Below, piece by piece: positions 58,173 to 63,952 of a DNA stretch of 64,000 nucleotides. The stretch spans positions 91,362 to 155,361 of the forward strand of contig MU619239.1 in NCBI GenBank assembly GCA_025201805.1. Reading direction: 5' to 3'. The notes under the pieces were generated by a model, which did no database searches, had not been told where the DNA came from, and worked only from the letters and a program-made list of their open reading frames with translations. Source of the stretch: Parasitella parasitica NRRL 2501. Taxonomy: Eukaryota > Fungi > Mucoromycota. Within the stretch, counting starts at the first letter, position 1. Each line of letters opens with the position of its first letter. A program made the translations under genes and the position numbers.

Positions 58173-61100
58173 ATGGTTATTAATCAGCAATCAAAGAAAG
58201 AAAACATCACATTTGATACTAATGACGAAAGCAAGAGATATCAGACTGTCCACAATGAAAAGGCAATGAGTCGAGAAACGACGCTTTCAGGCAGTGAATG
58301 TGGAGATGACAAGAGATCGTTACTGCAAAAAGTGCTGATGAGAAAAAGAAACCTCATCCGTCGCAAGTCTAATGGCCATGTGCCATCTATGGAGGGCCCC
58401 CCTTATCATACCATGCAGATTGAAACCGTCGCGCAGCTGATGAAGTCTGACTTACAAGACGGTTTGACTGAAACTGCCGTAAGTGAAAAACACGCAGAGT
58501 TTGGCTACAATGAGATGGAAGGCGACGGCGGCGTCAATCCTGTCAAATTAATGATGAAGCAGTTCTTTAACGTGCTGGTGCTGATTCTGGTGATTGCAAT
58601 GGCGGTTTCGTTTGCCTTCAAGGATTGGATTGAAGGCGGCGTAATCGCTTTTATCATGTTGTTGAATGCTGCTATTGGCTTTATGCAAGAATACAAGGCT
58701 GAAAAGACCATGGACTCTCTGCGTCAGATGGCTTCTCCTACTGCTCAGGTCATCCGTGAGGGCCAGCAAAAGACAGTGGCTACAAAAGAGTTGGTTCCTG
58801 GTGACATTGTTATTCTTAAAAACGGTGATGTTATTGGTGCTGATTGCCGTGTGATCGAGTCGTTCAACATGGACATTGACGAAGCTCTGCTTACTGGTGA
58901 ATCATTGCCTGTCAATAAGATGTGAGTATTTTATCGTGTAATTGGTAGTCAACTGTTGCTAATGTTATCCTATAGTAACGACGTTCTTGACACTGCTGAA
59001 GTTCCCCTAGGCGACCGTGTCAATATGACTTACTCTAGCACTACTCTCTGCAAAGGCCGAGGTAAAGCCATCGTCACATCCATTGGCATGCAGACTGAAA
59101 TCGGCAAGATTGCCAAGCGCTTGCTCGACAGCGGCGATAATACCCGCACTCCTCTCCAAAAGTCCCTGGATCGCATGGCTATTGTCCTTTTGGTTATTGC
59201 CATTATCTCTCTCATTATTGTGTTTGCTGTTGCCAAATTCCAGATCGATGACCAAGTTGTTCTTTATGCTATTTCCACAGCTATTGCCGTCATCCCCGAA
59301 GGTCTGATTGCTGTTGTCACGCTGACGCAAGCATTTGGCGTGAACGCCATGGCCAAAAGCAATGCCCTCGTCCGTCGCTTGGTCGCATTGGAAAACTTGG
59401 GGTCTGTCACCAATATTTGTTCTGATAAAACCGGCACACTGACTCAATCAAAGATGGTGCTGACTCGTTTCTGGAGACCTGATACAGGCTTCTACAGGGT
59501 TTCGGGTCTTGGTTTTGATACCAGCGGTGACGTTACGCCCGAAATCGAGCAGGAAAATGAAGCTGTGACCAAGAGTAATATGAACTATGGCTTACGTCGT
59601 TTGGTCCAATCTGCTGCTTTGTGCAACATGAGTGAAGTACGCCAAAATCATGAAACCCAGGAATTCTATGGCATTGGCGATCCCACTGAAATCGCATTGC
59701 AAGTGTTCTCTCACAAACTCGACATGGGCAAGCCTCTTTTGACTGATACCAACGAAAGCACTGACGGTGGATGGAAGCTTCTTTCTGAATATCCTTTTGA
59801 CTCTTCAATCAAGCGCATGAGTGTCCTTGCCGAGCAAAAAAACGGGGATTTGGTTGGATTTTTGAAGGGCGCCACTGAGCGTGTCCTGGAATGCTGCAGC
59901 AGCATTCAGCTATCTGCTCAGGACGAAATCAAGCAAGTCAGCAAAGATGAGCTTGAAGCTCTTGTTTTACCCAATGTGCAAACTCTGGCCGAAGGTGGTC
60001 TTCGCGTGCTCTCTCTTGCTGCCAAGCGTATTCCTAGAAAGAGCAATGGCGGTGAGGTCACTTTTTCTACTTTTGACCGTGAAGAAATTGAGCAGGACAT
60101 GGTCTTTTTGGGTCTGGTTGGCATCTATGATCCTCCTCGTGCCGAGTCCAAGGATGCTGTTGAAAAGTGCCACAAGGCCGGGATCACTGTCCACATGCTA
60201 ACGGGTGACCATATTGCCACTGCTACTGCCATTGCCCGCGAAGTGAGCATCATCCCCGCTGAAGGCGATGTCAGCGACCTTGTAATGTCTGCTCAAGCCT
60301 TTGATAAACTCTCTGAAGAAACGATCGACCAATTACCCAATCTGCCCCTAGTCATTGCCCGTTGCAGCCCTGATACCAAGGTCAAAATGATCGAGGCTCT
60401 TCATCGTCGTAAGCGTATCAGCGCAATGACAGGCGACGGTGTCAACGATAGTCCTTCTCTAAAGGAGTCTGACATTGGTATCGCCATGGGCCAAGGTGGA
60501 TCTGACGTCGCCAAGCAAGCGTCTGATATCATTTTGGTTGACGATAACTTTGCTACCATTGTTGCCGCCATCCAAGAGGGCCGTCGTGTATTTGCAAATA
60601 TTTCCAAGTTTGTCGTCCACATGGTTTCCGTCAATGTTGCTGAATTAACGCCCTTGCTGCTTTGTTTGGTCTTTAGAGAGGGTAACAACATTGTGTTCCC
60701 TCTTTCTCCCATACAGATTTTGTTCAACAACTTGGTCACAAGCGCTCCTCCTGCTATGGCTTTGGGCCTTGAAAAGGTGCATCCTCAGCAGATGCTTGTC
60801 AGACCTAGGACTAGCAAGGAATCACTCTTTTGCAACCGAAACATTATCGATATCTGCTACTACGGCGTCATGATGGGCTTAATCTGCATGGCCAACTATG
60901 CTATTGTCATTTATGGTTATGGAGACGGCAGTCTTGGTGTCAACTGTAACCTCTCTTTTAATTCCAACGAATTCCGCGATACCTGTGTTGATGTCTATCG
61001 TGCCCGTGGTGCCTTGTTTGTCACGATGACTGTGCTGCTGCTGCTTCATGCTCAAACATGCCGTGATCTTGTCAATCCTACATGGACCTGGAAGAACTTG

Positions 61101-61374
61101 GCTGGCGAGCAAAATTATTACATGTACTATTCATGGGTATTTGGCTTTGGAATCATGTTTATTGTGCTTTATGTGCCAGTGTAAGTTGAAGCTGAATAAA
61201 ACATACATAACCGCCGTGATACTAATAGGTAATTTTAGCGTCAATACCGAAGTGTTCAAGCATCTACCAATTACATGGGAATGGGGCATGGTTGCCGCCT
61301 CTGTAATTGTATATATCATTCTAGCAGAGTCTTATAAACTCTTCAAGCGCAAGTTCTTTGCGATTCGTAAATAA
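58173..61374 (+). CDS. ENA1: ENA-type (P2D) Na+/K+ efflux P-type ATPase
   Basis: QEYKAEKTMDSLR, LTGES, AVIPEGL, LENLGSVTNICSDKTGTLTQ, VHMLTGDH, PLVIARCSPDTKV, FPLSPIQIL; 2 introns. Confidence 0.9.
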
Positions 61375-61895
61375 TCCATTTGTACATCATAAACACATAT
61401 TATTTAACTGCACTCATGTCCGTTGCAATCAAAGTACTCTTTATCCAAGAATAATAAAAAATAAAATCAAAATAATAGTGAAATAGCCTTTTTCACTATA
61501 TAAAAGAAAACATGTAGCTTTCTCGGTCGTATACGGCCATATTTGAATCCTCCAAAGAGCCTCTGCCCAAGCGGATAAAAACAGACAAATACGTTTAATA
61601 TAATGGCTGTGTAACTCTCATGTTTTTATATTCCAAATAAACAAATCAAATCCTCTTTTTCTCTTTTCTTTATTAAAAGGAGAAGACAGAATTCATTATA
61701 CCGTACAGACATACCTTGGACCTAAACCCTAAAGCTGGCCCTTTTTCTTTTATTAAATACTTCCGAATATATTTACATATACCCCTCCTTACTCTCGCTT
61801 TTCCTCTCTCTCTCTCTCTCTCTCAAGTATAATCAATTGATCTTCCAAACACCCACACGCTTCTTTCTTCTTTCGTGTCTGTGAATCGATACGCC

Positions 61896-63952
61896 ATGAC
61901 AACAGATGAACCAGCAGGGAACAAATGCTCACATTGTCAGAAGCCAGCAACATTCATGTGCTCTTCGTGTGGACAAGACGGGCCGAGATACTGTTCAATT
62001 GAGTGCCAAACAGATCACTGGAAAGCCAATCACTATAGATTATGTAAAGCAGCGAGACGAAATAGACAAAGACATGCAGAGGCTGCTGCTGCCGTCGCCG
62101 CCGCCGCCGCCGCGACAGCAGTCAGAAACGATGAAAGATCAAGTATGTATAAAGACTGCAAACATTGGCCATATGTGGATGTGTAAGTTGACAGTCTTTG
62201 CCGATACATAGGCGATATACCCATGGACGATCTCTCCCAAGGCCAAAGTCAGGAAAAGTTGGATGAAGAAAGTGATGGCTTCGACGACAATGCTGAAGAA
62301 CTCAGATTCTATACCCTGCAAATTTACCGCATTATCAAACCAGTGGTTGCTTGTATTGTCTTGAGCATCTTTTGGGTCAAGGTATCGTATTCAGGTTTGA
62401 GCGATTACAGGTAATACTCAAGGTCTGCTAGATTTATGTCAACAAGCTTATTAACCACCACCACCCCCTCCTCCTCCTCCTCCTCCTCCCTTTTTTTTTA
62501 CAGCCCCAATAGGCCGAGCTATGTCAATGTATCGCCTGGGCCGTCCACATCTTCCAGCACAGACGGTTCAACAAGCAGTGGTACATCAATAGCGAATTCA
62601 TTTACAAATGCAGCCATTATTATTGGACAGATCATCGGCGTGACAATATTGATTGTGTTTCTGTTCAAAAAGGGATGGATCAAGGTGTTGATTGGATTTT
62701 TTATGGTGGTCGTGTTGTTATTATTGGGATTTATGACCTATCTACTTTTACTGTAAGTGGTTTAATGGTGTGGCAGCAAAGTGCACGTCCTAATGCCTGT
62801 ATCAAACAGTAATTTGGTTCAAGTATTCTCGATTGCATTGGACTACATCACATTGGTATTTGCATTGTGGAATTTCGCAATGGTAGGTTTAGTGTCTATT
62901 TTCTGGAAAGGGCCGCTTTGGGTGCAGCAATCTTATCTAACGATCATGAGCTCACTGATGGCTTTTTCGTTGACTGGATTGGAACAATGGACCACTTGGA
63001 TCTTATTAGGCCTCCTGGCTATTTGGGGTAAGCGTGACACCATTGGAGGCATATATTAAATACCTATTGACATACCTGGATAAACAAGATCTCATTGCCG
63101 TACTATGCCCGTTTGGGCCGCTTCGTTTGTTAATCGAAAGTTCGAGAAACCAGCAACGAGAAGTACCTGCATTGCTGTACTCGGTGAATGCGGTTTGGTT
63201 CATGATGGCCTCGAATGATCATTTTCGATTGTCAAACAGTATGACCGGCACCGGAGCTAATGAATCTATGCCCAATAATGAAGCTGCTCCGCCGATAGGG
63301 AACAGATCATCTGCACAGCATCGTTCACCTTCCTCTTTTATTCAACAAAATTTCAGGAAAAGCCATGATGGATTTATGCGATTACCTGATGATAGCCATG
63401 TTACCGTGGATAGCAGTGCGAGCAACAGTAGTCCATCTGCAGCTGATATCGCATCGAGCGCTGTAGACGATATGGATCAATCAGGCAACACAGGACAAGA
63501 GGCTAATAATAAAAAGATTGAAGTTGAAAATGACGAAGAAGATGGTAAGCACAGAATGGTTTAAATCCTCAGCCCAACCCTAACCCTATCAATGTGTGTG
63601 TGTGTGTGATTTTTCAATCAAGCTGAAAGAAGTGGGCTTAAACTTGGATTAGGTGATTTTGTATTTTATAGTGTATTGATCGCAAGAGCAGGTAAATGCA
63701 TATCCGTAGATGGGTGTGTCAATGTATTAATATGTTTGGATAGCCATGTATGATTGGATTACCACTGTTTGCTGTACTATTGCAGTGTTGACAGGTTTAA
63801 CAACAACGATATTCCTTTTGGCCATATACAAGAAAGCATTGCCCGCTTTACCAATATCAATTGCATTTGGAATACTGTTTTATTTTGTAGCTAAAACTGT
63901 TCTTGTTCCGTATGTTGGCGCGCTCTGTGTATTTGGCATGGTTGGATTATAA
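61896..63952 (+). CDS. Presenilin (A22A aspartyl protease) with N-terminal MYND zinc finger
   Basis: MYND CSHC..CSSC..YCSIECQTDHWKANHYRLC spliced in frame via intron 62143-62211. Presenilin motifs IIKPV, WNFAMVG, WKGP..QQSYL, AIW|DLIAVLCPFGPLR, KLGLGDFVFYSVL, ALPALPISI. Confidence 0.9.

Follow-up and report, generated by a model that had tools for sequence, protein, structure and literature searches.

A presenilin with an N-terminal MYND zinc finger in Parasitella parasitica and the possible use of the finger in a fungal gamma-secretase

What would a MYND zinc finger do at the N-terminus of a presenilin, which is gamma-secretase's catalytic subunit? The question is raised by a gene in a stretch of 64,000 nucleotides (nt) from Parasitella parasitica NRRL 2501 (Mucoromycota; GenBank assembly GCA_025201805.1, contig MU619239.1, positions 91,362 to 155,361 of the forward strand), which is called the window in the following and whose numbering is used for all positions of this gene. 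An earlier note, made from the letters of the window, had described there a presenilin whose first exon encodes a MYND finger, and the coordinates and content given there agree with what we found. A single spliced mRNA contains the whole fusion, each of the two domains exceeds its profile threshold, and the three partner subunits of gamma-secretase are encoded in the genome. We consider it probable, at roughly 70%, that the protein serves as catalytic subunit of a gamma-secretase and that its MYND finger is a functional adaptor which binds a ligand.

The gene, its transcript and its two domains

The coding sequence begins with the ATG at 61896, ends with the TAA stop codon at 63950-63952, and comprises 1647 nt, i.e. 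548 codons and the stop. The gene is organized as follows, with transmembrane segments abbreviated as TM and amino acids as aa:

61896-63952, +: MYND-presenilin gene, 7 exons, 548 aa
61686-61895, +: 5' leader, from the spliced transcript contig; the start at 61686 is inferred from 14 contig nt beyond 61700
61896-62142, +: exon 1 with start codon, MYND finger and a basic, poly-Ala linker; zf-MYND 30.5 bits, spliced contig
61926-62045, +: MYND zinc finger proper, residues 11-50, C4-C2HC; ortholog alignment, AlphaFold2 (AF2) model, fold match
62143-62211, +: intron 1, GT..AG, 69 nt, phase 1; removed in the spliced contig
62212-62410, +: exon 2, acidic linker and TM1; weak PF01080 match, spliced contig
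62504-62752, +: exon 3, lumenal loop rich in Ser/Thr, TM2 region; PF01080 51.7 bits, spliced contig
62810-63027, +: exon 4, TM3-TM6, with W and base 1 of the codon for the catalytic Asp at its end; PF01080 89.4 bits, contig
63089-63544, +: exon 5, remaining bases of the codon for the TM6 Asp, DLIAVLCPFGPL, large cytosolic low-complexity loop; PF01080 58 bits, contig
63623-63691, +: exon 6, TM7 with GLGD (63646-63657); PF01080 36.1 bits
63744-63952, +: exon 7, TM8-TM9, PAL (63842-63850), stop codon; PF01080 78 bits

All six introns are of the GT..AG type and 52-93 nt long, and the residues at the six exon junctions are S, S, L, D, A and A. At intron 1 the split codon A|GC encodes Ser, so that the fused protein reads ...ERS-S-DIPMDD and the frame is kept; retention of this intron would lead to an in-frame TAA after 14 more codons. 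The lengths of four of the six introns (62143-62211, 62411-62503, 62753-62809 and 63545-63622) are divisible by three.

The transcript evidence is one assembled contig of 1900 nt from one public run, whose type was guessed and which probably stems from the same organism or project. This contig matches 61700-63990 with 0 mismatches, lacks the six introns, in each case at the predicted position, and contains the 62142|62212 junction between the MYND exon and the presenilin body, and the transcript therefore joins the two parts in frame as proposed from the DNA, instead of starting after 62212 with an unjoined MYND exon. As the six-frame genome search found only two presenilin loci, both of which contain introns, and no intronless copy, the contig derives from spliced RNA. 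A single contig gives no information on transcript ends, abundance or minor isoforms. The leader of about 210 nt upstream of 61896 contains no ATG in the spliced contig, and the start codon of the MYND exon is therefore the first AUG of the transcript. A CT dinucleotide run is found at 61800-61826, in the 5' leader or promoter region, and a GCC/GCT repeat at 62076-62123 in exon 1 encodes the poly-Ala linker.

Exon 1 matches the zf-MYND profile (PF01753) over the full model (positions 1-39) with 30.5 bits at a cut-off of 22.7 bits (E 3.8e-7). Its pattern C11xxC14, C22xxC25, Y32-C33xxxC37-Q38, W42, H46xxxC50 includes all eight zinc ligands, and the Cys/His pattern is thus complete, as had been claimed. 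In 40 diverse orthologous MYND regions, C11, C14, C22, C25, C33, C37, H46 and C50 are invariant together with A18, Q38 and W42, while Y32 and S34 are conserved in at least 90%. Y32, Q38 and W42 match Y540, Q546 and W550 of BS69 with equal spacings of 6 and 4 residues, and in BS69, ETO and DEAF-1 it is these three strictly conserved residues outside the zinc ligands that touch the peptide (PMC4742278; PMC3555993). When exon 1 was modelled with AF2 from the orthologue alignment, residues 11-50 reached a predicted local distance difference test score (pLDDT) of 93-97. The best PDB matches of this model are the solved MYND domains of ZMYND10, BS69, ETO, ZMYND8 and SMYD2/3 with a root-mean-square deviation of 1.4-2.7 A, and among them is BS69 in complex with a PXLXP peptide; by sequence, the closest solved domains are those of ZMYND10, ZMYND11 and ETO. 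The Foldseek probability is 1.00 in the best rows, and the E-values are weak (best 3.5e-3) because the domain is small, with about 40 residues. The idea of the earlier note that the finger is a built-in cytosolic adaptor appears reasonable, since zinc ligands and Y/Q/W triad are conserved in about 40 diverse orthologues and since presenilins have a cytosolic N-terminus.

For the presenilin body, the Pfam search was run exon by exon, and full-length orthologues from databases stood in for the whole protein. Exons 3-7 each pass the PF01080 cut-off of 34.3 bits on their own and together cover model positions 47-408, and exon 2 adds a weak match to positions 3-28. In the six-frame genome search, the locus scores 135.6 bits as a presenilin. 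No match to Peptidase_A22B (PF04258) was found at E <= 1 in any exon. The codon of the catalytic Asp of TM6 (W-D, 63024-63027 | 63089-63090) is split by intron 4, with the G at 63027 and the AT at 63089-63090, and GLGD follows in TM7 and PAL before TM9. A low-complexity stretch of about 110 aa inside exon 5 constitutes the TM6-7 loop, and all motifs that had been noted for this part, including the large loop, were thus located in exons 4-7. Aligned collinearly with the Pfam model and with its orthologues, the protein would have nine TMs and a cytosolic N-terminus.

Does the genome also encode the other components that a gamma-secretase requires? The earlier note had suggested searching for them, and in the assembly of 32.8 Mb all three partner subunits were found with Pfam profiles above the cut-offs, along with a second presenilin:

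C61:138969-139708: nicastrin, PF05450, 67.8 bits
C124:10783-11436: APH-1, PF06105, 140.9 bits
C13:325350-325677: PEN-2, PF10251, 45.6 bits
C38:212660-214362, -: second presenilin, a MYND-less paralogue, from the six-frame genome search

The second presenilin has intact Y-D (its TM6 motif), GLGD and PAL motifs and a short acidic N-terminus without a MYND finger. In the most conserved exon it is about 50% identical to the MYND-presenilin, and its orthologues occur, among the matches listed, only in Mucorales and Endogonales.

Distribution and age of the fusion

Gamma-secretase was long said to be absent from fungi. Is the MYND-presenilin a peculiarity of Parasitella? When exon 4 was used for a profile-free scan of 1.84 billion representatives, 150 presenilins were returned, 19 of them with an N-terminal MYND pattern. 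With the full-length Calcarisporiella orthologue (P0009) as query, at least 81 of the best 120 homologues carry precomputed PF01753 and PF01080 annotations. They come from Mucorales, Umbelopsidales, Mortierellomycotina, Glomeromycotina, Basidiobolus and Syncephalis as well as from Blastocladiomycota, many chytrid orders and Amoeboaphelidium, and Piromyces (Neocallimastigomycota) has the fusion, too. The fusion therefore spans Mucoromycota, Zoopagomycota, Blastocladiomycota, Chytridiomycota, Neocallimastigomycota and one aphelid, and related orthologues with both domains, whose absence would have spoken against the gene, are abundant across Mucoromycota and other early fungi. The MYND pattern, both Asp motifs and PAL were found together in 83 fetched proteins. 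PF01753 is present in none of about 90 animal, amoebozoan and unnamed protist presenilins among the matches listed, which agrees with the statement that animal presenilins have no MYND domain.

In a maximum-likelihood (ML) tree of 43 sequences, a single clade (SH-aLRT 100) unites the MYND-presenilins with the seemingly MYND-less models, and its branching follows the fungal phylogeny in broad terms. The fusion has therefore been inherited vertically, in all major non-Dikarya fungal lineages and an aphelid, and predates the aphelid-fungus split. It is ancient and appears to have been kept since before that split. The MYND form is the standard presenilin of non-Dikarya fungi and not a rare find, and the best explanation for the gene is that it represents the ancestral fungal form of presenilin. 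The MYND-less paralogue of Mucoromycotina forms a long-branch clade with an unresolved position in the free ML tree; a tree in which all presenilins of fungi are constrained to group together fits even slightly better and is not rejected by the approximately unbiased test (p-AU 0.61). The paralogue may have arisen by a duplication within the fungi that was followed by MYND loss.

Are there true orthologues without the finger? This was considered and mostly dismissed, as most of the respective database models are truncated in the finger, misframed, or keep a motif that follows the finger. The models P0195 (Mucor ambiguus), P0208 (Apophysomyces) and P0205 (Rhizopus stolonifer) start inside the finger, and P0212 (Parasitella) reads the MYND exon in the +1 frame, which is why these four lack a PF01753 annotation. 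The finger-less models P0202, P0249, P0253 and P0255 keep the post-MYND motif. Such models are therefore no evidence of MYND loss, and they are mostly annotation errors; the MYND-less models of Gonapodya, Bifiguratus and Amoeboaphelidium occidentale fall outside this verdict.

The motif after the finger is a second conserved short element of the type (G)RGN-[AVI]-AQ-[VIL]-IN, located 30-80 residues past the MYND finger (P0009 117-132, P0154 125-140, P0232 129-144, P0119 310-325). It was found in 29 fetched fungal presenilins, which belong to Glomeromycotina, Umbelopsis, Calcarisporiella, Syncephalis, several chytrid orders and Piromyces, and in 0 of the fetched non-fungal ones. Exons 1-2 of the window gene lack it, and sequence comparison shows its loss in Mucoraceae, this gene among them, where the MYND finger itself persists. 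In the models P0258, P0041 (Batrachochytrium salamandrivorans) and P0156 (Rhizophagus irregularis), further domains (ARM/HEAT repeats; PF06094) stand N-terminal to the finger and the presenilin body; these models are probably merged neighboring genes and not true larger fusions.

The upstream neighbor of the presenilin gene in the window is a long open reading frame (ORF) piece of a P-type cation-transporting ATPase (58956-61184, +) with the Pfam domains E1-E2_ATPase, Cation_ATPase, Hydrolase and Cation_ATPase_C.

A possible role of the finger and the alternatives

How could the finger contribute to the function of the protease? The presenilin would assemble with nicastrin, APH-1 and PEN-2, and the complex would cleave stubs of type I membrane proteins within the bilayer. 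In animals, the N-terminus of presenilin is cytosolic, and with the same topology the fungal finger would therefore sit in the reducing cytosol, about 90 residues before TM1, on a flexible linker with basic, Ala-rich and acidic portions. There, the groove of Y32, Q38 and W42 could dock a short proline-containing motif (PxLxP or PPPL-phi type) of another protein, and this motif might be borne by the tail of a substrate, by a factor for trafficking or assembly, or by an effector to which the released intracellular fragment is passed on. The recruitment of substrates to the catalytic subunit is in animals carried out by nicastrin and exosites. We tentatively propose that the MYND finger may be an arm that recruits substrates or effectors, by way of a cognate proline motif on these, in a fungal gamma-secretase pathway, which we regard as possible rather than probable.

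Several points weigh against the view of a catalytic subunit with a ligand-binding adaptor. Proteolysis, complex assembly, zinc binding and peptide binding are all predictions. The single contig is compatible with a minor MYND-less isoform that starts downstream, and the MYND-less second presenilin could be the main gamma-secretase subunit of the organism. Moreover, no candidate ligand was found: the TM6-7 loops of 25 orthologues and exon 5 of the window contain no conserved PxLxP, PPPL or PxLE motif, and the loop was thus rejected as an intramolecular ligand; the ‘APPIG’ in the exon 5 loop is not common to the orthologues. These motifs were also not found in the ORF pieces of the nicastrin, APH-1 and PEN-2 of the genome, and a ligand in the tails of the partner subunits was likewise rejected, a weak negative, as the search was done on six-frame ORF pieces with unrefined gene models. 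As MYND specificities vary between proteins (PMC3555993), the type of the ligand motif is a guess.

The missing ligand motif in the partner subunits and the TM6-7 loop would be explained if the finger acted in cis, i.e. as a structural or regulatory zinc module that serves folding, retention in the endoplasmic reticulum, dimerization or autoinhibition of the presenilin or the complex and has no external ligand, and the RGN-x-AQ-x-IN motif of many lineages could then be its intramolecular partner. We nevertheless consider this unlikely, since, apart from the zinc ligands, the invariant residues are exactly the triad with which ligand-binding MYND domains contact their peptide, and since Mucoraceae lost the RGN-AQ-IN motif yet kept the finger.

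A second alternative assigns the two presenilins to different tasks: in Mucoromycotina, the MYND-less paralogue (C38) would be the gamma-secretase subunit, and the MYND form would, for example, be a stand-alone protease or a scaffold or have a Ca2+-leak function. The genome does contain two presenilins with intact YD/WD, GLGD and PAL motifs, and the N-terminus of the paralogue resembles the short acidic animal type. However, among the matches listed the paralogue is limited to Mucorales and Endogonales, and chytrids, Blastocladiomycota, Mortierellomycotina and Glomeromycotina showed only the MYND form there. Early fungi are nevertheless reported to retain the gamma-secretase complex (PMC10406608). 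In addition, the branch lengths of the tree indicate that the MYND form evolves more slowly. Such a division of tasks is therefore quite improbable.

An artefact, in which an adjacent small MYND gene and a presenilin gene were joined by read-through or in a chimeric contig, is effectively refuted: in several database models of close relatives the MYND exon is indeed missing or misframed, but these are truncated inside the finger or still have the post-MYND motif, the canonical GT..AG intron is removed in the RNA contig with the frame kept, there is no stop or start between the two domains, and at least 80 genomes that were annotated independently show this architecture as well.

What follows for a gamma-secretase subunit with a ligand-binding adaptor? 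No published description of a MYND-presenilin fusion was found in the literature searched, nor were studies on the role of gamma-secretase in fungi. NCBI and UniProt already contain dozens of orthologues in which both Pfam domains are present, and the protein thus is a catalogued but undescribed variant. New here is that the architecture has been noticed, and that it is shown to be expressed, ancestral and under constraint; in addition, a systematic mis-annotation of the MYND exon is flagged in several deposited genomes. In all early-diverging fungal lineages sampled, the catalytic subunit bears a MYND finger of the ligand-binding type, and as the finger has apparently been kept since before the aphelid-fungus split, it can be argued to be integral to the use of the enzyme in these organisms. 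If the finger indeed is a recruiting arm, it would belong to a regulated intramembrane proteolysis that is specific to fungi and aphelids and was lost together with the whole complex in Dikarya, and it would provide a direct handle toward the first fungal gamma-secretase substrates. The finger is a concrete experimental entry point to partners and substrates.

Comparison with known systems

Among the closest known systems are the deposited orthologues, for example from Mucor, Rhizopus, Lichtheimia, Phycomyces, Mortierella, Rhizophagus, Basidiobolus, Allomyces, Batrachochytrium, Piromyces and Amoeboaphelidium. Exon by exon, the window gene is 64-97% identical to Mucor and Parasitella proteins, which places the organism in the Mucoraceae near these two genera. 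The orthologues have the same PF01753 and PF01080 architecture and were named automatically as ‘Presenilin-domain-containing protein’ or ‘MYND-type domain-containing protein’, the latter being the UniRef name of two orthologues.

Animal presenilin-1/2 (MEROPS A22A, PF01080) are a further reference. The fungal gene matches their Pfam model over positions 3-408 and shares with them the TM6 Asp, GLGD, PAL and a large cytosolic TM6-7 loop that ends in an acidic run, and as in the animal systems, the gamma-secretase partner subunits are encoded in the genome. A hydrophobic VWF-MA segment lies at the position of endoproteolysis in animal PS1. The identity to animal PS1 is about 35-40%, as judged from related fungal queries. 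Unlike the animal and amoebozoan presenilins listed, the fungal protein has the N-terminal MYND finger of about 50 aa and the linker, and every fungal MYND form examined has W-D as its TM6 motif, where animals have Y-D.

Signal peptide peptidase (A22B) likewise is a GxGD-type intramembrane aspartyl protease, and it is the GxGD protease that is retained by Dikarya. Its topology and substrate orientation are opposite to those of presenilin. The protease-family matches among the exons of the fungal gene are all to PF01080.

The finger itself has its counterparts in ZMYND11/BS69, ETO/CBFA2T1, DEAF-1, ZMYND8 and ZMYND10, which have the same C4-C2HC ligands and Y/Q/W spacing and are its best sequence or fold matches in the PDB. 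Like BS69, the Mucorales finger has a basic run after the last Cys, and in BS69 the basic residues at this position matter for PXLXP binding (PMC3555993). The main difference is the cellular context, as these MYND domains occur in nuclear chromatin or transcription proteins, whereas the fungal finger is tethered to a polytopic membrane protease.
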